NCBI GenBank assembly: GCA_047495785.1
Contig: JBLDXI010000029.1
Coordinates: 2,914,001-2,978,000 of the forward strand
Direction: 5' to 3'
DNA: 64,000 bases
Source of the DNA: Lepidodermella squamata
Taxonomy: Eukaryota; Animalia; Gastrotricha
Under the pieces are notes generated by a model. The model did not search any database and had not been told where the DNA came from. It worked only from the letters and a program-made list of their open reading frames with translations. Made by a program: the position numbers and the translations under genes. Positions 14,584 through 39,060 of this stretch are shown piece by piece. Each line of letters opens with the position of its first letter. Position 1 is the stretch's first letter.

Positions 14584-15549
14584 ATGGCAAGTGAGCAACC
14601 ACGATGCCACGCTGGCTCAGAAGCCGAACCATTAGAACGTGGTTCGCCGTGGTCTGATCATGCGATTTGTCAAATTCCAGGCAGTAGATTTACCGCGACT
14701 GGTTTCATTGTTGTGATTGAACCCAAGACTTACCTCCTGACCAACTACCACGTAATCGGCTGCGATGGAGCGCCCATACTGCTTGGAAAGGGCAGCAAAT
14801 TTACCATCTCATTCCACCAACACCTTCTGGGACCTAACAAAGTGACAGTGAAAATCGGCAAGCATGGGCGATTCTTCTTTGGCTTACGCGAGCTCGATGT
14901 CACTGTCATCGAATTGGGCGAGAAAAAGTGGAAATTACTGCAAAGGCTGGGCATCACCCATTGCCCTTTGGCTCGCCCTGGAAGCCGGGCCGCCATTCCT
15001 ATTGTTAGCGCAGCCGTCGACGTGGTCGGCTATCCTTACATAAAACCTTCGCATGCGAGGTTGGTCAGTCGTATCTCTAGCGGAACAATCGGCGAAGTTG
15101 ATTATCCAACTGTTTTGTACACGGCGCAAACGCATGCGGGCTCATCTGGCGGCCCAGTCTACGTTGGCTCGGTCGTTGTCGGGGTCCATTGCGGCTACAA
15201 TGGCAATGTTGGTTACAACTTCGCGACGCTGTTCGAAGCAATCTGGGAGGGTGTGAGAAGGCCAATGAGGGAGAATCAAGAAAAAAGGGCCGCGCTGCTT
15301 AAAAAAATCCGCGAGGATCGCTTGCGGGCGATTGGAAGGGTTGGATTGGATTTGAGCGACATACCTTACTCGGAGTTCTCGTCTGTTCCCGGGTTGTATG
15401 CGGACGCTGATATCTCGCAGGATAATATGTCAATTGAGGACGCGGAACTCGATTCACCCGACTCGGGGTCAAGCTCAATCTCAGTGTGGGAGAAAACCAA
15501 GTCCGAAGCGTCCAACTCAAACTCGGGCTTCGACTGTCGAATAATGTAA
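14584..15549 (+). CDS. Leaderless trypsin-fold (Trypsin_2 / V8 / FAM111-like) serine protease, group A, C-terminal CaaX
   Basis: Triad motifs LTNYHVI, ELDVTVIEL, THAGSSGGPV, and VGVHCG; no signal peptide; ends DCRIM-stop; ATG at 14584. Confidence 0.85.
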   Translation: MASEQPRCHAGSEAEPLERGSPWSDHAICQIPGSRFTATGFIVVIEPKTYLLTNYHVIGCDGAPILLGKGSKFTISFHQHLLGPNKVTVKIGKHGRFFFGLRELDVTVIELGEKKWKLLQRLGITHCPLARPGSRAAIPIVSAAVDVVGYPYIKPSHARLVSRISSGTIGEVDYPTVLYTAQTHAGSSGGPVYVGSVVVGVHCGYNGNVGYNFATLFEAIWEGVRRPMRENQEKRAALLKKIREDRLRAIGRVGLDLSDIPYSEFSSVPGLYADADISQDNMSIEDAELDSPDSGSSSISVWEKTKSEASNSNSGFDCRIM

Positions 15550-15950
15550 AAAAACCTTTTGGGCCTGAAATTGGCCTGTTTCTCTATTCTCGGCCACTTG
15601 GATTCCTCCTCGGGATTCCTTCTCAGAAGTTGTGCAGCTTGGCTGCATGATTCGCGGCGCCAAAGCTATGCCGGTATGGTTTCGCCTTGGTGACGGCTGA
15701 CGGCTCAGTCACTGTTTATGGCTACGCATCTCTTCGTTTACGGCGGTCAAGCGTTGATAGGGGAAGTCTCTGGTCGACCCAACGTCGACAACTCGCTGGA
15801 TTTTGCAACATTTTTGAATGGCAACGATCCCGTGAATTCGAGCATTGCCGTGTCTCGGATCTGCATGTTTGTGATCTCCTGCGAAATATTTGGCTTCGCG
15901 ATTCTCGTACTTCATTTTTCGTTTCGGTTTTCAACGAAAATTGCCTTTGT

Positions 15951-16730
15951 CAAATGGCTCGACATCTTTCGACTTGAGCTTGTTATCTTTACCTCTTGAC
16001 CCGAGATCACAATTCAGCCCGGTTCTTTGGCGTTGTCCGTCCGTTGGATAGCGCGGTCGCATCGCAATTTTCCCAGACCGAAGAACGCGCTTCGCGATTT
16101 CCGTGGCTACCAAGCGGCCCTGGGAGGTGTTTGCGGATGGCTAAGAGTAAGGATGTGCAATCGGCGCATCGGCACAATGACTCAGAACAATATTGCGATT
16201 CTCATATGATAATAACTGATTAGTAAGTATTCACTTGTTCGACTTAGATTCGAATTGTAAATTTTAAGCCTTGGGAACTCCGCTTATCATGTTCGTTTCA
16301 TTCTCTCAATAAAGTAGAGTTATACACAACACTAATTTTTTTAAATGAAATACCGCATTTTTTTCCTATAATAGCCCACTCCCAAATTGGGTCGCCCATC
16401 TTGAGACGTCAATGTCAACAAATCGCCCGCGCCTCATTCTCGTGGCATAGTCGAAATTCAGAAATTCGACTCAACATAGTCCACGGCTTCTCAACGTCCT
16501 ATATCCCCGCCCTTATCGTTTGGTTTTTTGGTTTGATAAGGAATTTTGTAATTGAGATAATGTTATTTTTATCTCAGCTTGTAAATGTGCAAATTAACGA
16601 GACTGGAAGTTGAAGGCAAATTTTTATTGCTTCCGCAACGCAGATAAATCTGCAAAACTCTCAAGCGTAGGTGCCCAAATTTTGCTAATCAACGCCTGTT
16701 AAAGTCTTCCGTTACAATTGTACATCTTTA
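15951..16730. repeat. Segmental duplicate of ~22866-23680 (upstream region of the group B proteases)
   Basis: aatggctcgacatctttcga, agaacgcgcttcgcgatttccgtggctacc and tttttggtttgataaggaat occur in both places. Confidence 0.85.
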
Positions 16731-17927
16731 TGCTGCAAAATTGTCGTCAGCGCCGTGGAAGGCTTGTTTAATTTTTTTGTCATATTTACCGCCAACGACG
16801 CTGCACTTAATCCAAACTACTTTTTATATTTTTTTATTCAAACTAAATGTAAGCTAAGCATTCCGGCAAGACGCTTTCCACAATCACAAGTAGTTGAAGA
16901 AACGTGAGCATTAAGGCTCTGTAAGTTTTTCATCGTCACAGACTGCAGCATAATTCATTGCCATGAATCCGTCTATTATTATAGGTTTCCAATGATTAAA
17001 CATAAAAAATATTACAGGATTAATATGTATAGTTTATTCAACTTAATTTTACACCTTCAACTTCTTATCATTATCATTTTTTACTATGACTACATTAGTA
17101 TTCACTCAGTATTAGATGACTACTAACGCAGCTCATATTTTCGAATTCGATGGTAATCTGCCTCGTATTAAGAAAATGGACAGAACAACTTCCACACGTA
17201 AGTGTGTTCTATCTGTGAGCTTGAAAAAATTCCCATTAAAATTTCGATTTGCCTAGAAAAACGGGCTTTCCAACGGTAATAATCAAAGGTGGTCTGAAAT
17301 GTACCTGTTTTTATTATAAATAAAGGGAATCCATGCCTCAAAACGTACATTTGGGACCCTCTTATTCCCTGTCAACCTGAAAGCCGATTTTTCGAAAAAA
17401 TTTACCAGCACTAGTTGACGCCGTGGGGCCATTCTGAATTTTTTTTCGGAATTTCAAGAAAGCCTTAAAGTTCTGCACCGATTATGAATATGCTAATGAG
17501 GTTTTCAAAATTACCCCACAAGTGTCCAAAATTAAACAAATCATGCACCGTACTTGTAAAATCAAGGTTACGTTCGGAAAAATTACAGAATTTTGTAACC
17601 CTCATGCCCTGAAATTGCCATTTTTCCTGATTTTCTAGAGCAGAAAACCAATGTTTTGTCCGCATTCTTCTGCTGCAGCTTTGAACTATTCTTTTTTTGC
17701 ATGCAAAGAAAATCAAATAAATAGCTCGATTATGTAGTGCTTTTTTGAGTTCAGCCTCCGTACTCCCCCACCTCTCCCCATTCGAGTATTTTTTCTGTAA
17801 ATGTAGAAAGATTGAGTGCTTTGTGAAATGCAGTCTCCTCTGCATTTAAACTAATGCCAGTCTCCTCGTTTAGATTCTACAGTTTTGTTCAAAACCAGCA
17901 AAATTAAACTAAACGATTCAGGAGGAA

Positions 17928-19034
17928 ATGCAACCGCGATGCACCGCTGGATCAGAGCCTGAAATATTAAAACGTGATTCGCCGTACTCTATGCATGCGA
18001 GCGGACAAATAATTTTACCCGATGGATCTACTGCGACTGGTTTCATTGTTGTGACTTACGACAAGGCATGGCTCATGGCGAACTACCACGTAATCGGCGG
18101 CGGCGAAAAGGCCATGCCGCTTGAGAGGGGCAATAAATTCGCCATCGCCTTTCACCCACAACTTTTGGGACCTAACAGGACAACAGTGAAAATCGGCAGG
18201 CATGGCCGATTCTACTTCGGCTATCCCGACATCGATGCTACTGTCATCGAATTGGGGGAGAATTGGGAGAAACGACTGAATAAGCTGGGTGTTACCGATT
18301 GCCCATTGGCTCGCCCAGGAAGCCGGGCCGCCATTCCTAACGTGAACGCAGTTGTCGATGTGATCGGCTATCCTCGCGTGGAACCTTCGCGTGCGAGCTT
18401 CTTGTATTATCTACTAAAAATGTTCGGCTTTGGAAGCAGCTTTGTTATTACAGGCACAATTGTTGAAGTCCAGCATCCGTTCGTTTTTTACACGGGGCAA
18501 ACGGATGTCGGTTCCTCAGGCAGTCAACTCTCTGATGGTCAAGTTTCTGATGTTGTTGCCATTCATTCCGGCTATGTCGGCGAGAATACTGGCGTCAATC
18601 GTGCTACGCTAATTGAAGCAATCTTGGAACGTGTGAAAAAAGATATAAGGACGGCCGGGCGTAAAGATGCTACCTCCAAAGGCAGTCTAGTCTATGTTGG
18701 TCAGATTGCTGTCGGAATAATGGAACCTATCTTGAGCGAGATACCGAACTCGGAGTTTCAGGACGGTAACGGGAGATTCGAAGATGTTGATTTCTCACCG
18801 CAGTACAATCTTACGAATACTAACGAGCAGCAGGAGCAAAATCTTCAAAAATCGTCCGACTCAGAGTCAGACTTCGAATTTCGAATAAACCAGTGGTTCG
18901 CAAATACCCCTCCTCTGAGGCGCAAGAGTGGCGAAAGCAGGACCGGCCTCAAAGTCAGTCTATTTTTTGCTGGGTCGGTTGCGGTGGCGGGGTTGGTGGG
19001 GTTAGCGGGTGTGATTTTTTATAAACAAAACTAA
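17928..19034 (+). CDS. Leaderless trypsin-fold serine protease, group B, C-terminal tail anchor
   Basis: MANYHVI, DIDATVIEL, TDVGSSGSQL, VAIHSG; C-terminal TM LFFAGSVAVAGLVGLAGVIFY followed by KQN. Confidence 0.85.
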   Translation: MQPRCTAGSEPEILKRDSPYSMHASGQIILPDGSTATGFIVVTYDKAWLMANYHVIGGGEKAMPLERGNKFAIAFHPQLLGPNRTTVKIGRHGRFYFGYPDIDATVIELGENWEKRLNKLGVTDCPLARPGSRAAIPNVNAVVDVIGYPRVEPSRASFLYYLLKMFGFGSSFVITGTIVEVQHPFVFYTGQTDVGSSGSQLSDGQVSDVVAIHSGYVGENTGVNRATLIEAILERVKKDIRTAGRKDATSKGSLVYVGQIAVGIMEPILSEIPNSEFQDGNGRFEDVDFSPQYNLTNTNEQQEQNLQKSSDSESDFEFRINQWFANTPPLRRKSGESRTGLKVSLFFAGSVAVAGLVGLAGVIFYKQN

Positions 19035-19591
19035 TCAAGTGAAAGAGTTCGCCCGGCATGCAAATGTTGAGAAACTTGACTTGCAGAAGTCTACTCTGAT
19101 ATTATATAATTTGCTATCTGAATTGATATTTTTTATTCTGAGGCTATAGCACAAGTAAAAAGTCTATGTCTGAACGGAGCCGGCCGAGATTTACGAATCG
19201 CGGAGACGAATGGAGAGTAAATCGAGTACGGCAAGTTTCGCCGAGCCTTTAATTCGCGATCTTAACGCCCCGCTATCGGCCGATTCCTGTGCCCCTTCTC
19301 GGTTAAACGGTTGTTTTGCGATAAAAAATGTTTTGAGCTGACAGAAGCAGGTGGAATCAAGAAATTAATTTATCGCACTCCGTGGCAATATAGAAAAAGT
19401 ATAGCGTTACGCATTTTATTTTAAGGAAAAATAGACCGTCCACTTGGCTGATCAACATTATCGGCAAAAGATTCGCCGCGAAGGAAAAATTCGTATATAT
19501 TAATATCCATGAAGCAAAAGCAGATCAAAAGAATGAGTTATGATGTTCCAAAGTCAAACTAGAGAGTTTTCAGTGATCGCAACTGACACAG

Positions 19592-22307
19592 CTACATGCC
19601 CTCGTAGCATTTGAAAGGATCCGTAAACGGCGACGTTGCATCCGAAACCTGTTAAGGAGCAGAGGAGTTTTCAAATTTTAAAAGCGGAGAAGTGACCAAC
19701 CTCAGTCGGTTTGCATCCGAAATCTGCATGTCGGCAGTCTGCGAACGGCTTGCCTGGCGTGTTACGGTAGCAGCGGATGTATTTCTATGCGCAATGATTT
19801 ATCAACAATATTATCAGCATTAGCCCGATTGAAACGAACCCAATTGAGATCAGCTCGATGGTTACACGCTAGTAAATTACGGCCGAAGAAGGCGTAGGTG
19901 TTGAACATCTAAAGAAGTAGATTGCAGAATCTCGCCGAAATTTCCCAATTGTTCAACAAAAACTCACAATTTTACTCTCACCGGTGGCACAGCCTTGGTC
20001 GCCGGCGATACAACGAAAAGTCGAGCCTTTGACGCATTTCTTGACGTTCTACAAAAGAAACAGCGCTAATTTGGCTAGATTGGATTAGATTATTTTAACT
20101 CACGCCTTTACTGCAAGTGTCAATGAAGCGAGTTGTCCACTCCTTAAAAGGAGTTTCCCCAACCAAGCAGTACCGCCTGCACGCTTCGAACTGGCCAGTT
20201 ACCGAGTTGATGCAACGCGAAGCTAATTGAGCTATTGAGCAATTAAATTAAGAAAGGGGGATTCGATATAGAGTAAATTCAAAGTAAAATGACTCACTGC
20301 AGCTTTTAATTTTGTCGTAATTCTCGCAGTCGGTAATTCCACCGTTACTCCAGCATTTTAAAGAAGAAAAATAGAGATTGCGACATGCATTTCCAGAGGC
20401 ATTGAAATCGCCTCTCGGTATATACATGTAGCGCAGCCCGGAATCTTCGGACCAGCGCGAGCAGGTTGCACCAGTTGCAGTCTTGGAAATGAGCGATCCT
20501 TCATAGTCACTAGCCACTGGCGTGATTCGGCATTCCTTACTCAACTCGGTCGCTTTAACGCCGGGACAAGTTGCGAAGACAGTCACACGGCCGCGTTCGC
20601 CCGCTTCCGGGTACACTATGCCTGAGTAGAGCAAAGCTTGATTGTTGTTGGTTACAAAAACACGCCCATTCATATTAGCGACACTGCAAAATCTAAACGG
20701 TGGAAAAATTTATAGCCATTTCAAGGCTAATTTCTTCGCGCTTACATAAACCCGGGAACTCTGCTCTCGAGCCCCAAGCCTCTTATGAGGACGAAGTTCA
20801 TACAATTTACAGATCCTGAAAATAAAGTTATTAGACAGATATTCTCAGTTTAGCAGATTTGCCCACCATGATATTCCAGAAAGAGCCAAGTTGGAAAGGC
20901 GAAGATCAATCCACTCGTAACACCCTGAAAAAGGAAAGGAAACGTGCAGGAAATCGAAAAGGGAAATAATTTGCAAACCGTTGTTACACGCCAGGAGCAA
21001 CGAGTCGAATTCGTTGTGCCAACTTTGGGTGTTGATATGTCAACGGTAGTACAAGGCTCAACGTAGATTTCGCCGCCACAGCCGTTCGCTATATCAGTCG
21101 GGTATGGGATTTCGCAAAAATCGCCAGCAAGACCAACAGGGCAGAAGCATTTTGTACAGTTCACGCTCGGATTAGGGTAGCCACTATTTTGGCATGTGAT
21201 CGTTGGGTTCTTGCATGGATCAGTATCTAAATGAATACGTGTGATCAACAGCGTTTCTTCGCAGCCGCTTAAACTCACTGAAGCAGTTGTAGAGCGTGTT
21301 CAACTTCACCATGTCGAGCAGTGACAGGTGGCTAGACTGTCCCAAGCTTGTAACGTATCGCCGGTCGGGTGGGTACCTCTCGCCCACCTTCAGATCGCCC
21401 ACCATATTCATAATAGGATTGAAGAGCGACTCATAGTCAAACGGAGTCGAGCTGTAGTACGTTTGCGCCGTATTTACAGGGTAGCTATTCAGAAAAATGC
21501 AAAAATCAAAGTAGCTCAAATAAACCATGAATCAAACCTGTTCTCGGAGCCAGGGAAGGGTGTGAGATATTGATCACGATCTGGCCTTCTGAGCTCATAC
21601 GTCAACCCTAGGACGTAGCCAATTTTTCTAATCGCAAATTGAACCTGATTCGAAGCCAGCTGATTTTTGTTTCAAGTGTTAAATAGGAAACTAACCGCGA
21701 AGCTTGAATCTTGGATGCCGTAAGAATTCCCGATAGCAACGAGCTTTGCAGGATAATCAACGCTATGATAACCTTGGGAGTTCCTGATTGAAAAAGAGAC
21801 TCATTATGAATTTCCAAGCTGCAACACAGCAACTCACCCATATTGTAAGAAAATAATCGAGTTTGACGTATTCACGTTGATGGAAGGTCGCTCCTCGAAC
21901 CGCAAACAGGTGACTGATTCGAGTTGAGCTATTGCTTGCCTGATAACGGCAGTATCGACCTCGGCTGCCACGTGAATATTAACATCATAAACAAGGACAT
22001 TTCATGAGTCACTCGTCAACTCACACAAAGATGCATCGCGGCAATCTGATGGGACGCTGCAACTGCCGCGTTTCCAGGTGTTGTTATTTAATGCGTAAGG
22101 TATCGGCAACGGCCACGGTTTCGCCGGCGGTTGGCCCGGGACGAAGCCGTCATAAGAGTAAGGGTACATGGTCGTTGTTATTACGGTTGAGACGACGTCA
22201 CCGTTAAAAATGGCAAAGGTGACGTTTTCAGCTCTCTCTGAGAGTGAGGAGACAGGGTGGAGATAAGCGCAAGCCAACACAAGCGTAATAAGGCGCACTG
22301 CCATCAT
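19592..22307 (-). CDS. Secreted astacin-like pseudoprotease with EGF, CUB-like, kringle-like and Cys-rich C-terminal modules (multi-exon)
   Basis: Signal peptide; WPLPIPY; AIAQLESVTCLRF; zinc-motif equivalent RKIGYVLGLTYELRRPDRDQY; FDYES; LGQ..LSLLD..KLNTLYNC; CQNSGYPNP..C.CP.GL.G.FC; DYEG..SKTATGATCSRW..NACRN; stop TAG at 19592-19594. Confidence 0.82.
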
Positions 22308-23877: not shown

Positions 23878-25002
23878 ATGTCAAGTGCGACATCGCGATG
23901 CACCGCTGGATCAGAGCCCGAACTATTAAAACGTGATTCGCCGTACTCTATGCATGCGAACGGACAAATCATTTTACCCGATGGAGGTACTGCGACCGGT
24001 TTGATTGTTATGATTTACGACAAGGCATGGCTCGTGGCGAACAACCATGTAATCGGCGACGGCGAAAAGGCCATGCCGCTTGAGAGGGGCAATAAATTCG
24101 CCATCGCCTTTCACCCACAACTTCTGGGACCTAACAGGACAACAGTGAAAATCGGCAGGCATGGCCGATTCTTCTTCGGCTATCCCGACCTCGACGCCAC
24201 TGTCATCGAATTGGGGGAGAATTGGGAGAAACGACTGAATAAGCTGGGCCTTACTGAGTGTCCGTTGGTGCGCCCAGGAAGCCGGGCCGCCATTCCTAAT
24301 GTGAATGCAGAGGTCGATGTGATCGGCTATCCTCGCGTGGAACCTTCTCGAGCGAGCGTTTTGTATTATCTGCTAAAAGTATTCGGCTTCGGAAGCAGCT
24401 TCATTATTACCGGCAAAATTGTCGCAGTTGAGCGTCCGTTCGTTATCTTCACGGGGCAAACGGATGTCGGTTCCTCAGGCAGTCAGCTCTCTGATGGTAA
24501 GGTTTCTGATGTTATTGCCATTCATTCCCGCTACCTCGGGGAGAATAATGGCGTCAATCGTGCAACGCTAATTGAAGCAATCTTGGAACGTGTGACGAAA
24601 GATATAAGGACGGCCGGGCGTAAGGATGGTATAATCTCCAAAGGCAGTCCAGTCTATGTTGGTCAGATTGTTGTCGGAATAATGGGACCAATCTTGGACG
24701 AGATACCGACGGAGGACGAGTTTCAGGATGGTAACGGGAGATTCGATGATATTGACTTCTCACCACAGAACGATCTTACGAATACTTACGAGATGCAAGA
24801 GCAAAATCCTCAAAACTCGTCCGACTCGTCGGAGTCAGACTTCGAATTTCTTATTAGCAAATGGTTCGCAAAAACTTCTCCCCCGGTGCGCAAGGGTGGC
24901 GAAAGCAGGACCGACCACAAAGTCAATCTATTTTTTGCTGGGTCAGTCGCGGTGGCGGGCTTGGTGGGGTTGGCGGGTGTGATTTTTTACAAACAAAACT
25001 AA
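23878..25002 (+). CDS. Leaderless trypsin-fold serine protease, group B, tail-anchored (paralog of 17928)
   Basis: VANNHVI, DLDATVIEL, TDVGSSGSQL; identical C-terminal TM plus KQN. Confidence 0.85.
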   Translation: MSSATSRCTAGSEPELLKRDSPYSMHANGQIILPDGGTATGLIVMIYDKAWLVANNHVIGDGEKAMPLERGNKFAIAFHPQLLGPNRTTVKIGRHGRFFFGYPDLDATVIELGENWEKRLNKLGLTECPLVRPGSRAAIPNVNAEVDVIGYPRVEPSRASVLYYLLKVFGFGSSFIITGKIVAVERPFVIFTGQTDVGSSGSQLSDGKVSDVIAIHSRYLGENNGVNRATLIEAILERVTKDIRTAGRKDGIISKGSPVYVGQIVVGIMGPILDEIPTEDEFQDGNGRFDDIDFSPQNDLTNTYEMQEQNPQNSSDSSESDFEFLISKWFAKTSPPVRKGGESRTDHKVNLFFAGSVAVAGLVGLAGVIFYKQN

Positions 25003-25554: not shown

Positions 25555-25738
25555 TGAGCGCCCTACTGCTTGGAAAGGGTAGCGAATTTACGACCACCTC
25601 ATTTCGTCAGCACCTTCTAGGACCTAACAAAGTTACAGTGAAAGCATGGCCGATTATTCTTCGGATTACGCGAACTCGATGTCACTGTCATCGAATTGGG
25701 AGAGAAAAGATGCGGAATCTACTGCAAAAGCTGGGTGT
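25555..25738 (+). pseudogene. Fragment of a group A protease, truncated where the LINE tail begins
   Basis: gagcgccctactgcttggaaaggg, caccttctaggacctaacaaag and gaactcgatgtcactgtcatcgaattggg match 14769-14955 with frameshifts. Confidence 0.85.
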
Positions 25739-28700
25739 TATTTATTTATTTATTTATGAGCATTAATATCCAAGGGATGTAGGACAGCTCAGCTGAAAAA
25801 GAAGCATGATTAGTACAATTAGATTCGACGTGAAGAGGTCATTATGTAGATATCAACAAAGAAAGTTAGGAAATTAGGAAAAAGACAATGACATGCATAC
25901 CAGTATAAAAATATCGTATTTAGACTCAACAAGGAATTGGAAATTAATCATCAGTAACGGTATTTACAATTTCACCGCTTGCCTCGATGACGTCACAACC
26001 TTCCTCAGTGTTTGCAGTAGGTTCAGACAGTAAATAATAATAAGTTAGGTTCCGGCATTGATCCGCGCTGGTAGCTAAGCGAATTTCGTTCGGCAAGCCA
26101 TTTCAGAACGTGGCGCCACGGTATCGAAGGCATCGCATCGAAGTATCGGTCTTCACGCGAGGGACAACCAGCAGGTTGTTCGATGCATTTATGTTGACTT
26201 GCCTCCTTGTGACCCCAGCGGTTTTCTCTTGCAGTTTGAAGAACTCGGCTAAGGCAGCCGGTGCTTCGCCATTGATGCAGCGCCATATCATGGTTGCCAA
26301 ATGAACTTTCCTTTTACCATCAAGGTCTAGCCATTTTAGCTTTTTCCTCAGAGATTCGATGTCAACGTTTTCATTCGCATGACAAATTATGCGAATGGCT
26401 TTGTCCTGTCGTCGTTGAAGTTAGTTTTTGCCGCTTGGGCTAGGACGCTGTCACAGTACATTAGGTGACAGAAGATGACACCATTAGCCATCAATTTGAG
26501 GGTTTTTCGATCAAGGAATTTAGCCGCAAATTTCAGAGCAAAGAGACCACCCCTGGGTTTGTTACCCACATGTTTGAGCTGTTCAGTGTGCAATAGTTTG
26601 TTGTCAATAATATAGCCCAGGACTTTGAGCGATGTGGTGATTTCAACTCTCGTATTTTCGATTTTGATGGAGATTTCTGGGGGAGGTGCATCGGGATCAG
26701 TGATCAGTGGCTATGATTATCATCTGCGACTTTTTTCCATTGACTAGTAAGCTATTTGCTGCTAACCAGTCACTCTACCGGTTGATGTCGGATTGAAGGC
26801 GATCCTGAAGGCGTTCAACGTTTTTATCTGACAAGTAAATAGTGGTGTCATCTGCGAATTGAGCTATTTTCGAATATATTGGAATCGAAGCCATTTCATT
26901 TACGTAGATGGTAAATAGCAATGGCCCTAGGACACTGCTCTGAGGTACGCCGAATTCCACCTTAGCTTTACTTGAGCGACTTTGGTTAATTTCTACATAC
27001 TGGTAACGATCACTGAGATAGTTTTCGATCAACTGAATAGCTTCCAGTTCAAAACCTGCACTAGCCAAGGACCTATGGAGGAGTCAGAAGGAGTCAGAAA
27101 AATCGACTTTTTGCCCCTCCGGCGCCTTGGTACCCCCTTAGGGGAGATCTTGGGTCATCTTGGTGATCTCTCTGGATCTCTAATCGTGACACCTGGAAGC
27201 TTCTAATATTGATTTTCGAATTCTCCGTACTCGATTTAGTAATGAAATGATCTTTTTGAGAGAACATCCCTAAACATCAAGTCGTAAGAGATCTTCATTA
27301 GTCATCTTTAGTTAAGGTGGGTTAGCGTGTCATCTTGACCTACAACCCCATTTCGTCAAATGACTTTGGGCGGTTATGATCTCTCAAAAAGATCTTTTCA
27401 ATACAAAATCAAGTCCGGGGAGTAAGAAAATCAATATTAGAAGCTTCCAGGTGTTATGGTTAGAGATCTCACAGTTTTTCATCTACAACATTGGGAACGC
27501 TAGAACGACGCCGCGGCCTCGCGCGCGCTCGTTGCCCAACGAACGAACGAAAACCCGTTGCTAATGTAAACAAAATATTTTTTTAAATTCTAATTTCTTT
27601 CTTATTTTAATCTTTAAATTTGTTTTCAAATACAAATTTGATTTGCAGTGAAAAACATGCAGAAAAACGCGGAATTTGAATTTCTCGTCGTTCACTTTTC
27701 TAGGGGGGGGGTCTGCAAATAAGCCGAAATGTGCCAGTCTTCGGTGAGTTTTGCAAGGCAGCTGTCTGTTGAATGGAATTTGCGGAACCCAAACTGAGTA
27801 GGCGACAAGAACCTTGTTTCCGGCTTATTTAAATGCGATTTAATTTGGAACGAGATGCACCTCTCAAACGTCCTAGATATTGGCGATAGAATTGAAATTG
27901 GCCTGAAATTCGACACGTCATCTTTAGATCCTCCTTTGTGCAAAGGATGCACAATTGCCGTTTTCCATTGCTCGGGAATTGTTTTCGATCGAATTATTTC
28001 ATTGAATAAAGCAAGTAAATGCGGAGCAACAACGCTGGCACTCATTTTCAAAACTGACTCAGGTATTTCATCTATACCAGTTGTCGGTTTATTCTTTACC
28101 TTAGCCAATGCATCCAGCAGTTCCCTTGCGCGATTGCGCGAAAATTGAACTTTTCCGTGGTCTGGAATGCACGGTGAAAATTTAGGCGTTGCAGCATTGC
28201 AATGGCAATGTTTTTTCCAACATTGGCGAAAAGACTGTTGAAGGCATTGGCTAAGGTAATAGCCTGATTTTTTTCAAGTCCAGAAAAATCATTTTCCCCC
28301 GTTTTCTTTTTGGGCCGAAATTCATTTACAATCTTCCATAATTTTCGTGGGTCTTTTCCAGCTAATTTCACCTTTTGTCTCCACTTGGCGCGACGAGATT
28401 TCCTGACTTTCCTGCGGTCTGACCGTTGCTTTTCTTGGGAAATAAATGTTGAGTGCAACATTTTCGCTTATTTTTCGAGATCTTTTTTGTTCTTAATGGA
28501 GAGTTTGTTGAGCACAGTAATGAAAGCACCTTGGATCCTGTCGCAGTATCCTTGTTGATCCTCGTCTCGTTGAAGTCCGGAATCTCCTAGGGCCTTTTGA
28601 AGCTCACATTGAAATTGATCAGCCTTAATTTCACGCAGATTACGAAATGATATTATATCTGGCTTCGGTGTTGTTTTCGGTTTTTTGCCTAGGTCTCTAA

Positions 28701-29000
28701 TCGATAAAACTATCCCATGATGGTCGCTTAAACCAATTATTGTACCTGAGATGATGATTTCTTGAGCTGTAGCAGTTGACCAGAAGTGATCGATCATCGT
28801 GCCTTTCTTAGTGCGAGTGTCTACCCGAGTGAATGCTGGAGGAAAACTATGAGTCATTTTGAAAGAATCAAAAGTTTGCTCCAGATCCTCTGCAATCTGC
28901 GGTTTCAAGAGATCCCAATTTAGGTCGCCGCCCAGAATTCTATGCTCGATTTCGCTAGTCTTAGCTACGAGTTCGACCATCATGTCGGGTGTCACAGATT
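25739..29000 (-). mobile_element. Decayed L2/CR1-clade LINE (APE endonuclease plus RT) with internal insertion
   Basis: APE motifs GGDLNWDLL, MIDHFWS, SDHHGI; RT motifs FRPISILS, QFGFR, GVPQSSVLGPLLF, FADD; (TAAA)n tail at 25739-25757; multiple frameshifts. Confidence 0.88.
27061..27712. mobile_element. Unclassified insertion inside the LINE RT containing a perfect 28-bp inverted repeat
   Basis: RT coding is interrupted; cacctggaagcttctaatattgattttc (27190-27217) has its exact reverse complement at 27426-27453. Boundaries approximate. Confidence 0.5.
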
Positions 29001-29049
29001 GTCCATTGGCTCGCCAAGAATGGCTCGATATGTTTCGTCATCGGCGTGT

Positions 29050-29286: not shown

Positions 29287-29289
29287 GTT

Positions 29290-29480: not shown

Positions 29481-30469
29481 GAGCGACAACGGAGCCATAA
29501 GTCTCTCAACTGCCAATTCAAAGAGCATTCATCATCAAAATGTTGCCATCGCGGCGTTTAGGTCGATATCAAAGTGAAAAAAGTCCGCGAAGTGAAAAAA
29601 GTGAAAATTATTGGAGCGGCTCACCGATTTTGCTAAGAAACAAGTCGAGATGTGCAGACTCCAAGTATGGCAAGAGGAAGAAAGGAAGCACTGGCCATTA
29701 GTCATCGGCATGAATAATCGCCGAGGAGAAACTTGGCTGGTCGGGTTTTTGGAACATCCATATCGCAAAAAGGATGGAGACAACGTCACGTCACATCGGT
29801 TCGCCGTTCTATTCCTTTTTTGATAAGATAAGGAAGAGGTGTTAGCCTTTATTCTGCTACGCCGCATTTTCGCATTGTGGCTTATTTCGTTTTTCTATCT
29901 ATCTATATTTCATTTTTTACATTCATGGTTTAATCTGCAAATAACAATTAGTCGAGTTTGGAGTTTGGAGTTTCATGGCCGAGAATTCAGCACATTCCGA
30001 TACACATTTTCCACATTCAATCGAGAGTTTAATTCACAAGTCTCTGAACTGAAGCGTTAGAAGCAATGGGGTGCGTTTCTTCATCTACAACAGAGATGAA
30101 ATTATTAACGAAATAAGCTATAAACAAACCATTTCTTTATTTTTGTTGAAATTATTAGCTCAACAAAAAGTTATTTATTTATGCTTATTTTTGCCGCTTA
30201 AAGTTATTTATTTATGCTTAATAATCAGCCAGCGTTTCATTCATTAAACATGTTTTTTGCCCGAAATTACCAACAACGTAATTTTTGGACATTGAGACGT
30301 TTTTGGAGCAATTTTTTCCAAGTCGTACGCATCATGACCCAGCCCAACGTTGACAGAAGAAGATACTATCTTATTTTTCTACACATTTTTTCCAAGTTAT
30401 GGATAAAAATGGATATAAAAAATGGTCCCTGTTTTTTGCCTTGTTTTCAACAAAATCTGTTGATATTAA

Positions 30470-31480
30470 AGAAACGTACCAAGCCAATCACGATGCAATG
30501 CTGGATCAGAAGCCGAATTATTACAACATGGTTCGCTGTGGTCTCGTCATGCGATCTGTCGAATTTCACACTGCAAAGGCACTGCGTCTTGTTTCATTGT
30601 CATTATTGAATCAGTGGCATACCTCCTGACGAACCACCACGTCATCGGCGACGGTGAAGCGTCAATACCACTCAGAAAGGGAACAATAATCAATATCACA
30701 ATTCACCCACACCTTCTGAGATCTAAGACGTTTACAGTGAAAATCGGCAAGCACGGGCGATTCTTGTTCGGCTCCCCCGACCTCGATGTAACTGTCATCG
30801 AATTGGGCGAGAACAAATGGAAAATGATGCAAAAGTTGGGCGTCACCGATTGTCCAATTCGTCCGAAAAGCCAGTACGCTATTCCTATGGTAAATCAAGC
30901 CGCCGATGTGGTCGGCTATCCCAACATGAGGCCGTTGCATGAGGAGTTGGACAGTCGCATTTCTAGCGGAAAAATTTTCCAAATAAAGTATCCAACTGTT
31001 TATTACACGGCCCAAACGCGGGTGGGCTCATCAGGCGGTCCAGTATACGTTGATTCGTTCGTTATCGGAGTCCATGGCGGTTACAATGGCAAAATTGGTT
31101 ACAATTATGCGACGCTATTTGAAGCAATCTGGGAGCGTGTGCGTAAACCAATAAAAGACAATCGATTAAGGAGGGCCATGTGGTGTCACCAAGTCCGCGT
31201 GGATCGCTTGCTACCGAAGAATATGGCGACTGGACGAAGCGAAGAGAACCAGAACGATGTCGGCAATTTGAGCGACATACCTTACTCGGCGGAGTTCATG
31301 TCTTTATTCCTGTTACATGCAGAACCTGATATTACACTGGATGATTTGTCAACTGTGGACGAAGAACTCGATTCGCCCGACTCAGGATCAAGCTTAATCT
31401 TAGAGTTCGAGAAATCCAAGTCCGAAGGCTTCGAAACAAACGCGTGCCCGCGTTGTGCCGGCGCCTTGAATGTCATGTAA
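30470..31480 (+). CDS. Leaderless trypsin-fold serine protease, group A; start codon or upstream exon not resolved
   Basis: Frame is open from 30470 (QSRCNAGSEAELL..., homologous to the paralog N-termini); LTNHHVI, DLDVTVIEL, TRVGSSGGPV, IGVHGG; no in-frame ATG before the domain. Confidence 0.7.
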   Translation, partial: RNVPSQSRCNAGSEAELLQHGSLWSRHAICRISHCKGTASCFIVIIESVAYLLTNHHVIGDGEASIPLRKGTIINITIHPHLLRSKTFTVKIGKHGRFLFGSPDLDVTVIELGENKWKMMQKLGVTDCPIRPKSQYAIPMVNQAADVVGYPNMRPLHEELDSRISSGKIFQIKYPTVYYTAQTRVGSSGGPVYVDSFVIGVHGGYNGKIGYNYATLFEAIWERVRKPIKDNRLRRAMWCHQVRVDRLLPKNMATGRSEENQNDVGNLSDIPYSAEFMSLFLLHAEPDITLDDLSTVDEELDSPDSGSSLILEFEKSKSEGFETNACPRCAGALNVM

Positions 31481-32228: not shown

Positions 32229-32262
32229 TAATTCTGGTCAAATTCAATTTTTCTATTCATAA

Positions 32263-32330
32263 ATTTCAGAACCGTACAAAAGCATGGCCTCTTTCCCTAT
32301 TGTGCTGAAAACCACCCATTTAAAATTGTG
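32263..32330 (+). pseudogene. Short fragment of a glycosyltransferase-like exon 2
   Basis: tttcagaaccgtac..tttccctattgtgctgaaaaccacccatttaaaat resembles 13264-13328. Confidence 0.5.
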
Positions 32331-33576
32331 TGTCATGGTCACTGATTCACCGGGGTCTCACAATGCTATCACTTGCCAACTGGCCTTCATATCTCTGGGA
32401 ACGCAATTTCTTGGTCTCGTCGTCGTTCCAATTTTTGTGCGCCTTGTTAACCAAAACTGAAGCCAAATAATATGATAATGCGGTATATGATACGTATAAT
32501 ATATACGGGGAAGGCATGATTAAGTCCCCGCAGTGACCTTTCTATGTTGGTTAAGTGTTTATCTGCTCTACAGGGGCAATAAAAACCCCCAAACGGAGAT
32601 TTAAGTCACATTTACTTGTATGATTGTTACTTCGCAATCGTAAGAGGCAGTAACATCCTTATAGTAAAGGGCGGTTATATATTTGTGAGCCCTTGGACTC
32701 GTGACTCAGACCCCGGTGATACGATGTTTTACCGCATGCGATTATTGTGAGCGATGAGTCAACGCGGTCAAGGTCGCTAGCCTAGTCATCGAACTAACTG
32801 CACTGCGACCAATATCACGCGTTACGGAGTTTCGTCGCTTGGAAAGAGATCACTCGTGAATGAGGAAACTTTTATCACGCGTGACGCACACTTTCCTGGC
32901 TATGTACATTTCTGGCTGACACCATTCAGTCAAAATATCAGGCTTGGCGCTTTTTTTAATCGGTCACGCATAATCCTTTTTCCGCTGCGGGTCACGCACG
33001 AATTATTTATACTGGCCCAGCATTTCTTATATCACCTTCTTCCAGGATATAGGCGTAGATCACGTGATGATCATCTATCAGCTGCTTACCTGTTGTCCCA
33101 TTCTATATATTTTTTATTAAAACACGGATGTTTTCAAATATTCTCATTCATTGTCTTCATTCATGATCAGCTACGGTGCCGGTGCGGCCAGTCACTACGG
33201 CGCCGTAGCAAATCCGCTTGGTTTTCGGCCCTATTTCACGGGTTCCGGGGATTCCATTCCCCAGCTCAGATTGTCAACGAGTTCCCCGGTCTCCCAGCTG
33301 TCAGTTGCAATCACTGCAGCCCGCCCTGCTTTCACCAGGTTGTCAACGACTTCCTTTAGGACTCATCTTTGTATGCATTTCGCTTTTCGCTGCAATTAGT
33401 ATTTAGTGCATCTACTCGGGAAGTATCCGATATACATTCAGCCAATGATATTCAGCTGGCTACATGCTGAATCTTTGAAAATTTTTAGCCTTACTGTGTT
33501 TTTTAAGTTATTCACTTGTTTTAATGTAGCCTCCCTTTTATACAGACGCAATCTACGGAAATTCGTGAAATTCCTA

Positions 33577-34254
33577 GGGTAGAGTCTCCTAATGACCGAC
33601 AAATTTGGTATTTAGCGATTCGAAATTGGTTTAATTTTTACTCTAAATAACCGGCCGTGCTAAATGTCAAGTGCTAAATAGCGAAATTCTTTTTACAGTG
33701 TACCAATTGGCAACTTGGCATGGCCAAGGCATGGCCAAACAGTAATGAATAATTGGTGGTCTCGAAGTTATAATCGTTTTATAAATTTGAAGCGCAAAAT
33801 TTTCGATTTCGTTGCGAATTCAACCTCATCGGAAGTTATCACGTCTACCAACTACCAATGTCCATTTGTGGGCGATTTGGTCAAAAACGGGGTTTCTATA
33901 AATTTATGGTGCATTCTGACATCAGAATCTTGATCTACGTGGTCGATTTACCCATTCCAGTGATTTTCAGGTCAAAATCGTAAGTTATGCATATTGGGGC
34001 AGGAAAAAAAAATAAGTTGTGCATCAGAATGGCACGGCCCCAATGGTGCATAATCGTGGCTCACTTCGGCTGATCAACAATGGCTCATCGGCCATGTGTT
34101 GCATAATCGTGAGTCGTGAGCTTTTGCGCGGTGATTAAAGGGACCCTAAGACACATCCCAGCGCAAACCGCTTCGAAAAAGACCCAACGGCTGATGAGAA
34201 ACTCATTTTCAAAATTTTGACCCTTCATTTATGCATCATTAGGAGACTCTACCC
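33577..34254. mobile_element. MITE with 19-bp TIRs flanked by TA
   Basis: ta-gggtagagtctcctaatga (33575-33595) and tcattaggagactctaccc-ta (34236-34256). Confidence 0.78.
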
Positions 34255-34399
34255 TACAGAGATGAGAATGGGTCAAAAACATCGACCCAGGACCCGAGGA
34301 GACCCATGTTGGGAGGACCCATAAATCTAAATTTCGTAATTTTGAAGCGGATTACTCGTGACGTTGTTTTTATGCATATCACCCTTCATTCTCATTGAA

Positions 34400-36275
34400 A
34401 CACCATGCGTCTATTGTCCTCGAGGCTGACATGCCTCGCACTAAGTGCATGTACTTCAACTATAAACACACAAGCCCTTGGATGCCAACGGTTGGCCCAA
34501 GGTGCGCCCTATAACTGACGGTTTTAAGACGTCGTTAGCGTTTCGGTATAACTCTCCATTTGACGGTAACTCCATCTCGCCATTGTTCTCTAGTTGCGGT
34601 AAAAAATTTACCGTAAACGGCACTACCTCGACTCTGAAGCATACATATACTCCTGAGCGGTAAAATTACTTTTTCTGCGGTAAGTTCAGCTCATATTATG
34701 GAGAAAAAGGATAATGGAGTCGGCACTGCGCGCAGATCTGATGGTGCGCGCGCATCCGCTCGCGTCTTGGCTCGCGTTCTTACAATAGAGCGTGTTACGC
34801 AACCGCTGTAGGGCATGACTATAACAGAAGAATTGCCAGTTGATTTACGGTGTTATAAATTGACGCGTTACCATGGTGCGCGAGCGGGATTCCTCCACGG
34901 CTCACATGCAGCATGCTTCTTGCGCTCGCTGTGTCAGCCGTACAGTAAGCGGAAAGACAAAAGCTTACGTTAAATAGTAACTGCCGCAATTGCTTCTACG
35001 TTCTACGGTAAAACTAACGCCGCGTGCGGTAAAAATGTACAAACGCGGCGGCGTTCGTTTTACCGCACAAGCATTGAGGTGACCTTGTTTGCGTGCTGCG
35101 GTAAAATAATTACCGCCAGATGGAGAGTTATACCGAAACGCTAGCGACGTACACATCGCGTCTCGACCGGATATTGAGCTTACTCGATTGAGCTTATTGG
35201 TGGGACGAATTTTCGTCCTGGTGAGGGACACCTCCGCAAGTTAATCCAGGATCACACACCCATTTGGGAGAATTTGCATACCACCGCCAAGGACACCCTT
35301 CAAGTCGTGAGGCGCCTACGGGCTCTCACGCTTCGGGACGCGGAACGTGTGACATACATGATGTCCGCTGATGTCAATGCCATGTATAACCAAGTGCCCC
35401 TCTCAGAGGCTGTCACTGCAGTACGGTGGTATCTAGAGGAATTCCGCAGGTTGCCCGATGATGCAATTGCGCCGGTGTGCGACCTGACGGAGCTGGTCTT
35501 GCGGCACAACACTGTTTCCTTCAATGATAAGTTCTACCGGCAGACGCGCGGCCTTGCCATGGGCGGAAACATCTCGCCCCCAGTGGCCATTTGCTGGCTG
35601 TTCTATAAGGAACGTTGGCTTTCAGTAGGCTCGGGGGCGCTATACACGACGCGTTTCCTTGACGACATTTTCTCCATCTCCCACATGCGGGAGGGACTGG
35701 AGCGCTTTGTTGATGCCTACGAGGGCAGTCACCCTAACATCAAGATAACCGCGGATATTGCGGTGGATAGTCAGCACTTCCTCGACATAAACGTTCAGCG
35801 TTGTGGGAATAGACTGCTGACGTCGCTGTACGTCAAGCCGACAGACAACTTAGCTCTCCTCCATGGTAGCTCGAATCACCCTCGCCATATTTTCACGGGG
35901 ATTATGCGCGGGCAGATCTTGCGATTTCTCCGCATCTGTCAGACACACAGCGCCTTTATGTCAGCATGCGTCCAACTTGGCACTCACCTTAGTAAACGGG
36001 GGTACAGTTGGCACAGCTTTGTTACCCAGCTACACCGGGTAAGTGCTGAGCGCAAGGGACTCAAGTGGCCCTTCGCCAAAGCACGCCGCCCTAGCAGGGC
36101 ATATGCATCGTCGCACACCTTGCCTTACAGCAAGGCGTTGAACCCCCTCTTGGGATTTTTGAAGAGTAAGGTACCACTGGCCTACACGCTTGAGAGCTCC
36201 ATCGGGCAGCGCTATAGGCGTTCAAAGTTCTCACTAACCCCCACTTCTGTATTTACAGGTGTGGCGCCGCGCTGA
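34400..36275 (+). mobile_element. Penelope-like reverse transcriptase, disrupted in its 5' part, with no GIY-YIG domain visible
   Basis: PRTKCMYFNYK, frameshift, HKPLDANGWPKVRPITDG; TTAKDT; SADVNAMY; GLAMGG; RFLDDIF; HFLD; LYVKPTD; SNHP..FTGI..GQILRFLRIC; RGY; LPYS. Confidence 0.88.
34533..35146. mobile_element. MITE with ~37-bp TIRs inserted at an ACGT site in the PLE RT
   Basis: acgt-cgttagcgtttcggtataactctccatttgacggtaa and ttaccgccagatggagagttataccgaaacgctagcg-acgt; removing it restores the frame GFKTYTSRLDRILSLL. Confidence 0.8.
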
Positions 36276-36516
36276 TCACCGGCCGATGTGGACAACAATG
36301 CCAGGCAAGGACTGCCTCTATATGACTGTTTCATACATATGAGTCACGCATTTTGTTGAATAAACATTTATGCCATGCTTACTCTAGCGGTGTTTTTCAC
36401 TTTCCTCTTGCCTTATCACAGGCAGAATTCAGCTACCTCTGAGTCGCCGAGGAAACACATGCACCAACCGCGCGTGGGAGCTGCCGGACTCGGGCTGCTC
36501 CAGCCAGTTTGCCAAC

Positions 36517-36897
36517 TTGAAGCGCCCGGTGGATCCTGCCTCCGAGGGGGATCGTGCCGTAGGCCAACACGCATTCTGGTTACGCATGTGGGAAGAAAAG
36601 CGCAAGGTTCCGTTCTTTCGGACACATCCCGAAGAACTCCTCTGCCTGTTCCGTAGTTGTGGCGCCACCACCCGCACCATATATGGCATGTACACCCATT
36701 TCATGCAGCGCCACAGGAAGGCAGGGTGCATTTTCCGCAATTTCTGGAAGCTGATTGTAGGTCAGCCGTGGAAAAAGAAGACTTCCCACTCGCCCTACAC
36801 AGTTCCTTGGCCGGAGTGCTGGTGTGAGGTGATTTACGGCTATGAAGATAAGCTGACCCGCCGCCAACTTCCGGAACATGGCGAAGCATCATCGTGA
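36517..36897 (+). CDS. Possible exon encoding a C2H2-like zinc finger within the transposon cargo
   Basis: CLFRSCGATTRTIYGMYTHFMQRH (C-x4-C-x12-H-x4-H); upstream acceptor-like site (ttatcacag at ~36421); AATAAA at ~36927. Confidence 0.4.
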   Translation: MKRPVDPASEGDRAVGQHAFWLRMWEEKRKVPFFRTHPEELLCLFRSCGATTRTIYGMYTHFMQRHRKAGCIFRNFWKLIVGQPWKKKTSHSPYTVPWPECWCEVIYGYEDKLTRRQLPEHGEASS

Positions 36898-38389
36898 CTA
36901 TCACTGTTTTGTGACTTGGCTCCATAATAAAAGTGTGCCCTTTCACCTAGTAAACGTCTGTTCTTTGACATCACCAACCACACCCGCCGTGATGCCCCAG
37001 TAAGTCACTTGCTGCACTTGGCTCTGGCCTGTAGCCTAATGTGGTGCACTGCAACCACGTCTCTGGGGACTAGAGACGCACAGGCGGTCCACTTCGTGTT
37101 GGACATGACTTTCCCTGGGGGTACCGGTCACGTGAGCCAGAACCAGAGCCACGTGAGTCGAGAGCCATGGCTGCCCGCGACCGCTATTGCGGGACCACGG
37201 GGGCACATTCCTGGCGCATTGCTTGGAGTGCGCGCTTTAGTGCGCGCTCCGGGTGCACACCTCTCGCCAATCGGCGTCACGGGCACGGACTTGGTCATTC
37301 TGCCTTTTTTCAATTTGAAAGAAAGCAGAATTTTGGGGATGTGGACCATTCGGCCTACAGAATGAGGGCTCACTGAACCCTCGCCCCAGGGCAAATGTCC
37401 CAAATAAAAAAAAACGGACCAATACACTGGAACCTTGACGTGGTGGTACCGCTTGACTGTTAGCTGTTCTCCGGACCTACCGAGTTGGCACTGTCGACTC
37501 CACCCTGTGAGGGACCCTGGCCGGACACTCTCAGTTGCCTAATCCCAGTGTACATACCGGATCACTGCTCCGGCTGTTGGGCTTTGCCACATTGACCAAT
37601 CACCTGCCAATGGTTGTGATTGTGCCCTGCCTCCATGTGCTATGTGCCCACCTTGCATACATGGAATGTGATGAATGACAGGCGTCACATTTTGAAGCTC
37701 GGACGAGATTGCTTGTAGCGTGGATTCCTCGCTGCACCCAACATGGGCCTCCATGTTGGCGACTGAAAACGACCCATTCTCATCTCTGCTACCCTATGCT
37801 GGTGTTGATGTTTTTTTTAACAAATTTAAGCTGGCCGTAGCACTGCGATAGCACTGAAATAGTAGTCGCCGTAGCGAAGACAAGTTATTTGTGTGCTACC
37901 ATTTTCGTATAATGTGAAAATTTATGTCGTGGAGTGGTTTCTAGCTATCTGTGGGTTACGTCCCACAAGAAACTGGATACTAACATGAATGGATACTCAC
38001 CACTTGAGCTTTCCCATTTGCGCTACCTGCGCTTTCTCATTTCAATTTCAATTTCAGAATATTGCCAAATACGTGTAATCAACGAGGAATTCATGTAAAA
38101 TAATGAAATAATAATAAAGCAGAGCTCAAAATTTGGACCAAAATTGTCAAAATTGTACGATGTTTCAATGAAAATCTCTCGATAATGAAAGGGATGTAAA
38201 AATGCTTTCAAGCCAGGATTCGTTTAATCAACTGCAAGGAGGTCGTCGAGGCCCCTCGAATGACTTTGTTGATGGCCAGGTTGTCGAATTAGCATTTAGT
38301 GGTGCGCGCCAGTAGATTTTAGCGGTAGATTTCGACTTGTCAAGATTATTTGAAGTTTTCGCGGGCACAACAATTCAACGCACAACAAA

Positions 38390-39060
38390 ATGATTTCAAG
38401 CGCGCACAACAATTCACTGGCTCACCACTCCTGCAACCGCGAAGCCAAACTTGGTCAGAAGCCGAATTATTACAGATTACAGCCTGGTGTGCCTTGAGCT
38501 GCGATCTGTCAAGTTATTTCAAACTTTACTTTCAATCCTGTCAATTTACTGCTTCATTGCCAGGATTCACCGTAAGAAATTCCTCCTGACCAACTACCGC
38601 GTAATTGGCGGCGGTAAAGCGCCAATACGGCTTGAAAAGGGCAATAAATTTACGATCACATTTTACCAACACCTTCTGGGACCTAACAAAGTGGAATTGG
38701 AAATCGGCTCAGACGGCCTATTCTTCTACGGCTTCCCCGAGCTCGATGTAACTGTCATCGAATTAGGGCAGAAGACGTTGAGACAAGTGCAAAGTCTGTG
38801 CTTCACGGTTTGTCCTTTGGTTCGCCCGAAAAGCCAGAACGCCATTCCCAGGGTAGAACAAGTCGTCAATGCCAGCTTGGGCATTCGTGTTTCTACCGGT
38901 ATTATTAGATCTGTTGATTCTCAGCAGGCTTTTTATAAGGCGCGAATCGGCCTCTCCGGCTCTCCAGTCTATACTGGTTCAGTCGTTATCGGATTCAATC
39001 GTCTGTGGAAGCTGGTTGTGATTCGGCCACGCTAATTGAAGCAATCCGGCTGCGTCTAAG
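38390..39060 (+). pseudogene. Frameshifted, catalytically dead group A protease copy
   Basis: LTNYRVI (His replaced by Arg), ELDVTVIEL, GLSGSPV; frameshifts at both ends. Confidence 0.82.

Follow-up and report, generated by a model that had tools for sequence, protein, structure and literature searches.

Nearly all trypsin-fold proteases of animals act extracellularly or in the lumen of organelles, and the few intracellular exceptions, FAM111A/B, HTRA2 and TYSND1, are conserved and well known. The proteases considered here are encoded by the gastrotrich Lepidodermella squamata, in a stretch of 64,000 nucleotides (GenBank assembly GCA_047495785.1, contig JBLDXI010000029.1, hereafter C29; C29:2914001-2978000) which, taken at its full length, is called the window, and they form a cluster of six related genes and gene remnants, c1 to c6. 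We are confident that they represent a real family, selectively maintained and specific to the lineage, of proteases that lack a leader, bear membrane-anchor signals and have a pocket of the Glu/Gln type. To the fuller reading, a polymorphic locus of lineage-specific, single-exon, leaderless proteases of the Trypsin_2/S1B type that would be tethered to membranes by their C-termini and are predicted to be catalytically competent, a probability of roughly 0.7 is given.

Among proteases of solved structure, the best profile and structural matches to the cluster belong to the S1B family of MEROPS, glutamyl endopeptidases and their relatives such as V8 (SspA) of Staphylococcus aureus, Esp of S. epidermidis, SplA-F and the exfoliative toxins. 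Both groups of proteins consist of a compact double barrel devoid of the S1A disulphides, with a His-Asp-Ser triad, a Thr five residues ahead of the nucleophilic Ser (S-5) and a His fourteen residues behind it (S+14). However, the S1B enzymes are made by bacteria with a signal peptide and a propeptide, are secreted and depend on a processed N-terminus, whereas the cluster proteins are encoded by an animal, possess neither of these two secretory elements, continue past the protease domain with a long helix, then a disordered linker and a membrane-anchor signal, and are only 17-23% identical to their S1B counterparts. The proteases of sobemoviruses and barnaviruses (family S39), such as that of Sesbania mosaic virus (SeMV; PDB code 1zyo), display a fold like that of the cluster proteins (Z 18.6; 5e-12 among the viral models of BFVD) and the same offsets for the Thr, His and Asn of the pocket. 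These viral enzymes are excised from polyproteins in which they lie beside VPg and the RNA-dependent RNA polymerase (RdRp), whereas each gene of the cluster stands alone and its S39 match remains below the cut-off.

Among the effectors that prokaryotes employ in NTP-dependent conflict systems are trypsin peptidases coupled to an effector-associated domain (EAD; Kaur et al. 2020, PMC7159879). Like the cluster proteins they are leaderless cytoplasmic Trypsin_2 proteins, and the bacterial members count among the nearest non-protist relatives of the cluster. The kinship is nevertheless distant, and the cluster lacks both the EAD adaptor and the linked STAND, vWA or MoxR genes: no EAD domain was matched by Pfam in c1-c4 or in the paralogue from contig C30 described below, and no NTPase gene occurs within the window. 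FAM111A/B are, like the cluster proteins, intracellular animal proteases with a domain of the Trypsin_2 type, and their architecture places an N-terminal ubiquitin-like (UBL) domain and other regulatory parts ahead of the C-terminal protease domain (PMC9798293). The cluster proteins, in contrast, are devoid of UBL, PIP-box and DNA-binding N-terminal region, their protease domain starting at about residue 7, and the comparison with FAM111 is only an analogy. The best profile matches of all (down to 2.8e-24) are Trypsin_2 proteins of AT-rich protists, known from metagenomes and transcriptomes (e.g., P0001-P0007), which start with Met-Gly in the manner of N-myristoylated proteins, are also leaderless, share the same Thr, His and Asn and carry a predicted cytosolic lipid anchor. 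Their anchor signal is N-terminal instead of C-terminal as in the cluster, they often contain tandem protease domains or fusions to WD40, LRR or MORN repeats, and they form a separate clade.

All six related stretches of the window lie on the + strand. Three of them are complete single open reading frames (ORFs) from ATG to stop, namely c1 (14584-15549; 321 aa), with a triad H56/D105/S188 whose members occur in NYHVIG, LDVTVIEL and GSSGGP, respectively, c2 (17928-19034; 368 aa), which bears an 11-residue hydrophobic insert in its second barrel, and c3 (23878-25002; 374 aa), a young duplicate of c2. The fourth, c4 (30470-31480), is an open frame of 336 codons with intact triad and S1 residues and without an ATG; its homology to the other copies begins at 30482, downstream of an in-frame stop at 30467-69, no ATG occurs between this stop and the His motif, and GTA occupies the position of the c1 start codon. 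An upstream start with a mini-intron was rejected because the in-frame ATG at 30422 meets stops at 30461 and 30467, and so was a splice from this ATG to the AG at 30470-71, which gives the wrong frame. The two remaining copies are dead. By tblastn, c5 (25563-25745) is a frameshifted c1-like remnant of about 180 bp, which spans residues 65-126 of c1 split over two frames and shares 82% of its nucleotides with the c1 copy of a second contig, C40. The c6 copy (approximately 38391-39035; ORF 38451-39035), also without an ATG, has its catalytic His replaced by Arg, an 11-residue deletion that takes out the DVVGYP segment and a second deletion, two residues long, where the T-x-x-G motif has its Thr, and is truncated past the strand downstream of the nucleophile. 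Since the copies share 46-62% protein identity and group in one clade with 100% support, their likeness is not due to chance. Contamination or an assembly artefact was considered and rejected, the contig being about 3 Mb long, with astacin, ankyrin and long interspersed nuclear element (LINE) sequences, and the cluster being mirrored on C40.

With respect to the family, c1 (36.4 bits, 1e-8) and c4 (31.9 bits, 2.6e-7) exceed the gathering cut-off (27.6 bits) of Pfam Trypsin_2 (PF13365, clan PA), and c2 and c3 are 46-58% identical to c1. A profile built from seven members of the family and run against all PDB sequences matched SplB (3e-11), V8 (3e-10), Esp (2e-9) and the exfoliative toxins (4e-6), followed by HtrA and DegP (approximately 3e-4), FAM111A (8s9l; E 0.029, 17.4 bits) falling far below. 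The AlphaFold (AF2) model of c1 residues 1-242, based on a 57-sequence alignment, has a predicted local distance difference test (pLDDT) value of 90.7 and a predicted template modelling score (pTM) of 0.89; V8 heads its Foldseek matches (1.9e-11), and VIA-align superimposes it on Esp, V8, the Bacillus glutamyl endopeptidase and SplB with Z scores of 21.4-20 over 181-201 residues. The model aligns with the mature N-terminus of V8 from residue 7 onwards, so that a long propeptide is absent. No domain other than the protease was found in c1-c4 by the Pfam scan, the NCBIfam search returned nothing useful, and PADLOC gave only weak generic protease-domain matches, to RT-protease and LmuA. Direct reading of the sequences revealed no Cys adjoining the nucleophile or at the equivalents of positions 42/58, i.e., no S1A cysteine pattern.

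The residues of the triad (H56, D105, S188) are invariant among the intact copies, and c1-c4 all contain T-x-x-G-S-S-G with (G/A)(V/I)H behind it. Across the 57-sequence alignment each of H56, D105, T183, G186-S-S-G189, P191, H202 and N212 reaches a conservation of at least 90%, and the equivalents of T183, H202 and N212, which line the S1 pocket at S-5, S+14 and S+24, are present in all of c1-c4. The Thr and the His correspond to Thr190 and His213, a pair for which enzymes of the V8 and 3C types are known and which goes with Glu/Gln at P1. In the SeMV protease, whose nucleophile is S284, the glutamate-binding residues T279, H298 and N308 have been defined by mutation (PMC4488728), and they stand at exactly the same distances from the nucleophile as in the cluster. 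Owing to this identity and to the Thr/His signature, cleavage after Glu, and possibly after Gln, is a well-founded prediction for the cluster proteases, though not a result.

Within the first 35 residues of the copies, no signal peptide is present, the best 9-residue Kyte-Doolittle mean amounting to 0.4-1.0. Homology between the copies sets in 4-8 codons past each ATG, the 5' flanks are unrelated, and in c2 and c3 in-frame stops occur merely 5-8 codons upstream of the ATG, so that an upstream exon supplying a signal peptide is unlikely. An earlier description of the locus, drawn from its letters (the sequence-only reading), had recognised a cluster of intronless and leaderless "V8/FAM111-like" serine proteases without S1A disulphides, had named a refuting upstream signal-peptide exon, and had pointed to the T-x-x-G-S-S-G motif with its downstream (V/I)H and to the Thr/His pair of Glu/Gln-specific enzymes. 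The places of the six copies and their division into live and dead motifs were borne out by the ORFs and tblastn, the copies are indeed single-exon genes with N-termini of low hydropathy, the motif and the pocket signature were both recovered, a conserved Asn being added to the latter, and the V8 half of the name agrees with profile and fold (Z 21). The link made by the FAM111 half is weak: FAM111A gives a weak profile match, does not appear among the top structural matches listed and contains the UBL that the cluster lacks. Similarly, the term "intact" given to four copies is correct for the motifs of c1-c4 and, for c4 with its missing start codon, for the motifs only.

Behind the catalytic domain, a long helix was predicted (residues 217-252 of c1, in a first AF2 model based on 7 sequences, pLDDT 47), followed by a disordered, acidic and Ser-rich linker in which short motifs are conserved across paralogues. 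Depending on the copy, two types of C-terminal membrane signal occur. Both c1 and its counterpart on C40 end in CRIM, a farnesylation box of the CaaX type with a Cys at position -4, an aliphatic a2 and a last residue of the farnesylation type, the modification itself being predicted. The C-terminus of c4 has diverged from that of c1 and has lost the Cys at position -4. In c2, c3 and the c2 copy of C40, a hydrophobic C-terminal helix of about 21 residues precedes just three final residues (KQN in c2). The 19-residue Kyte-Doolittle mean of this helix is 2.27 in c2 (345-363) and c3, and 2.05-2.27 when the C40 copy is included; the hydrophobic 19-mer stops 5 residues short of the stop codon. These three proteins thus show the two features characteristic of tail-anchored proteins, no signal peptide and a single hydrophobic helix that lies no more than about 30 residues from the C-terminus. 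The combination of a missing signal peptide with CaaX or tail-anchor signals predicts a catalytic domain exposed on the cytosolic side of a membrane, and prenylation of c1 and membrane insertion of c2 and c3 would be the events that these signals suggest. As a trait of the family at large the CaaX box was rejected, a Cys at position -4 occurring in only 5 of the 150 relatives surveyed, roughly as many as chance would give. The acidic linker of c1 (window 15440-15500) also contains DSGSSS, a DSGxxS-like motif of the phosphodegron type that reads DSGSSL in c4. In the linker of c2 (window 18650-18720) and its equivalent in c3, the segment GSLVYVGQIAVGIM resembles the β-strand GGPVYVGSVVVGVH that follows the nucleophile in c1, a likeness that may reflect a small internal duplication, or chance.

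The genome search covered the 121.2-Mb assembly of 151 contigs and returned 12 matches to c1, i.e., the six of the window, four on C40, one paralogue on C30 and one duplicate hit. About 15 further Trypsin_2 loci are scattered over the genome, several of which (about five) are leaderless single ORFs. Among them, the C30 paralogue (C30:860117-861721, L010:1117-2721, + strand) is a single ORF for a leaderless Trypsin_2 protein of 534 aa; the others are located on C15 (L022), C9 (L024), C32 (L029) and C13 (L033). The C30 paralogue is extended by about 120 residues at its N-terminus and 190 at its C-terminus, both without known fold, and is the member nearest to the protist relatives (5e-20).

Outside the genome, the best match of a profile search against 1.84 billion representative proteins reached 2.8e-24; 3116 matches had E<=1e-3 and 108 had E<=1e-10, and the level of 1e-30 was attained by none. 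With single sequences the best outside E values at library scale were 2e-5 for c1, whose top match is a protease from a Thiothrix metagenome-assembled genome (MAG), and 6e-9 for c4. In view of these values, no orthologue exists in the data searched. A word-based search with c1 found no matches, and the same type of search with the 57-sequence profile found metagenome proteins only. Most of the top 150 profile matches are Lys/Asn/Ile-rich and protist-like. A Met-Gly start occurs in 47 of the 150, accompanied in 27 of these 47 by a Cys at positions 3-6, a start of the myristoyl/palmitoyl type; a signal-like N-terminus was seen in just two, and the T...GSSG...H signature in 132. A smaller group of relatives, ordinary in composition, includes the Thiothrix protease and bacterial EAD11 + Trypsin_2 proteins, in one case with an additional weak match to TIR_2 that stays below the threshold. 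In a FastTree phylogeny of 47 sequences, all seven sequences of the cluster group together (100% support) on a long branch beside the EAD11-trypsin group, and the C30, C15 and C13 paralogues are placed elsewhere; this deep placement of the cluster is weakly supported and is not relied on. Two Met-Gly-start Trypsin_2 proteins, P0086 and P0133 (Logan/ENA), have in common a conserved domain at the C-terminus, some 100 residues long, with much Trp, Tyr and Pro and without Pfam match, and group with the C15 paralogue of L. squamata.

The four copies on C40 belong to a contig of 386 kb which is inverted and collinear with C29 at approximately 2.84-3.14 Mb, and which shows 93-97% identity to it over about 295 kb, as judged from three sampled regions that span about 320 kb of C40. 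C40 is probably the uncollapsed second haplotype of the region, a recent large duplication being the alternative, and the findings on C40 and on C29 at 2.84-3.14 Mb may thus be two accounts of one locus. Common to both arrays, at 90-95% identity, are c1, c2 and an astacin gene, beyond which they differ: C29 continues with c3, c5, a LINE, c4, another reverse-transcriptase element and c6, C40 with a c1-like fragment and a 274-codon ORF, and c3 has no counterpart in the C40 array. The 274-codon ORF (L008:1309-2133, - strand) is a copy in which His, Asp and Ser of the triad have become Asp, Gly and Pro, respectively, with the frame kept open, and may be either a pseudoprotease or a pseudogene of very recent date. 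Birth-and-death turnover of the array is real, as deduced from the dead copies, the young c2/c3 duplicate and the different gene content of the collinear C40.

The intact genes are under purifying selection. The ratio of nonsynonymous to synonymous substitution rates (dN/dS), calculated pairwise according to Nei and Gojobori, is 0.16 between c1 and its C40 counterpart, to which it is 98% identical in protein sequence (dS 0.079, p 5e-6), 0.33 between the two c2 copies (0.18 for the domain), 0.38 between c2 and c3 (dS 0.22, p 3e-6), 0.56 between c1 and c4 (0.48 for the domain) and 0.55 between c1 and c2. Overall values range from 0.15 to 0.56 and domain values from 0.15 to 0.5, and it is the latter, all significantly <1, that establish purifying selection. 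The birth-and-death process proposed by the sequence-only reading is upheld. The C-terminal anchors, the missing start codon of c4, the C40 array and the five or so additional leaderless Trypsin_2 genes had not been part of this reading.

The neighbouring genes are of various kinds. Between c2 and c3, the unrelated astacin-like gene (20248-22307, - strand; PF01400 4e-4 for one exon) is made of several exons, so that genes next to the cluster do have introns. A LINE-type retrotransposon remnant with reverse transcriptase and endonuclease ORFs (26775-28995, - strand) separates c5 from c4, and a reverse-transcriptase ORF (35274-36275, + strand; RVT_1 1.7e-4) lies between c4 and c6. The latter, together with several long overlapping ORFs, is contained in a GC-rich block at window positions 34000-38000 (50-53% against about 41% around it), which is probably a retroelement of different composition. 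Directly upstream of c1, a single ORF (12607-13893, + strand) encodes a 428-aa protein matching DUF6492 (PF20102, 7e-6), which is intronless like the proteases and possesses an N-terminal hydrophobic segment. At the edge of the window, a single ORF of 877 aa (55-2688, - strand) has no Pfam match.

Taken as a mechanism, the proteins would be synthesised in the cytosol without a signal peptide and held by their C-termini at the cytosolic face of a membrane, via a farnesylated CaaX box in c1 and a tail-anchor helix in c2 and c3. The long helix and the disordered acidic linker (approximately 70-100 residues) would carry the catalytic domain, whose S1 pocket would select Glu, possibly Gln, for cleavage. 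Turnover of the array proceeds through tandem duplication, decay and the insertion of transposons, and the two homologous regions differ in gene content. Both the P1 specificity and any biological role are proposals, drawn respectively from the pocket residues and from kinship and turnover. Several findings weigh against the proposed reading. Taken by themselves, c2 (18.5 bits) and c3 (16.2 bits) remain below the Trypsin_2 cut-off, and both have replaced the usual Gly-Pro after GSSG, two reasons why their activity is less certain. The structural margin of S1B over the HtrA/Deg proteases (Deg2 and Deg9, Z 20; about 1-2 Z units apart) and the sobemovirus proteases (Z 18.6) is small, so that S1B is the best assignment by a margin which is not wide. 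The CRIM box has an Arg at a1 and no second membrane signal upstream, and exact-protein look-ups with c1, c2 and the C30 paralogue yielded no transcript or protein match. As for an immune function, it is weakened by the pairwise dN/dS values, in which no overall positive selection was seen, and the window contains no partner gene of the NTPase, TIR, death-like or gasdermin-like type.

An immune effector is a reasonable idea in view of an array that turns over and contains dead copies, and of a kinship to proteases of conflict systems, and a role in intracellular conflict or innate defence is our best guess, put forward tentatively, the remainder going to lineage-specific processing or quality control at an organelle surface. 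The more specific proposal, by analogy with the trypsin effectors of bacterial NTPase systems, that the animal has evolved or acquired Glu/Gln-specific, membrane-tethered conflict proteases of its own, with a copy number that varies between haplotypes, which would serve as antiviral or cell-death effectors or sensors, is rather doubtful. A genuine contender is a family of housekeeping enzymes private to the lineage, engaged in protein processing or clearance at the surface of an organelle or of the plasma membrane, with copy-number changes as neutral noise of the array. Purifying selection without overall positive selection and a window devoid of immune-type partner domains agree with it, as does the housekeeping function of other leaderless animal trypsin-fold proteases, e.g., the peroxisomal TYSND1 and the mitochondrial HTRA2. 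Housekeeping enzymes would, however, be expected to have recognisable animal orthologues, none of which occurs among the 1.84 billion representatives, and the homologous regions differ in gene content and hold dead copies.

As to the origin of the family, acquisition from bacteria or protists with subsequent amplification is unlikely. It would account for the single exon of all copies and distant paralogues amidst genes with introns, for nearest relatives that are protist-like and bacterial, including the Thiothrix protease as top match of c1, and for a cluster branch adjoining the EAD11-trypsin bacteria. Yet the best outside matches of c1 and c4 are so distant that no donor can be named, the branch is long and poorly supported, and any transfer would be old, since the 3-Mb contig carries animal genes and LINEs and the paralogues are scattered in the genome. 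That the genes are domesticated protease genes of sobemo-, barna- or picorna-like RNA viruses which had become endogenous is very improbable: the matches to barnavirus and sobemo-like models (5e-12, as strong as V8), the weak Pfam matches to Peptidase_C3 (17.5 bits) and S39 (12.8 bits) and the SeMV-like pocket offsets speak in its favour, but both Pfam matches are below cut-off, protist and bacterial cellular proteins score better by sequence, the T/H/N pocket is common to cellular S1B enzymes and to 132 of the 150 cellular relatives, and no remnant of VPg, RdRp or capsid adjoins any copy. Scarcely credible, finally, is the idea of ordinary secreted proteases with signal peptides in unrecognised upstream exons. 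Although the 5' ends are predicted from sequence and c4 combines a missing ATG with an AG at 30470-71, such exons are at odds with a homology that starts so close to the ATGs downstream of unrelated flanks, and with the in-frame stops of c2 and c3; furthermore, there is no disulphide pattern, a tail anchor or a CaaX box does not suit a secreted protein, and the relatives are leaderless as well.

A literature search found no published description of such a family of membrane-tethered cytosolic proteases. A private, cytosol-facing family that combines two types of C-terminal anchor with a Glu/Gln pocket of the V8/3C type would represent a new architecture for the trypsin fold, and the claims made here are easy to test, owing to the small catalytic domain, the absence of the S1A disulphide pattern and the single exon. 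The protist relatives of the lipid-anchor type, together with the bacterial conflict effectors, hint at a broader and as yet unstudied class of intracellular, membrane-tethered serine proteases.

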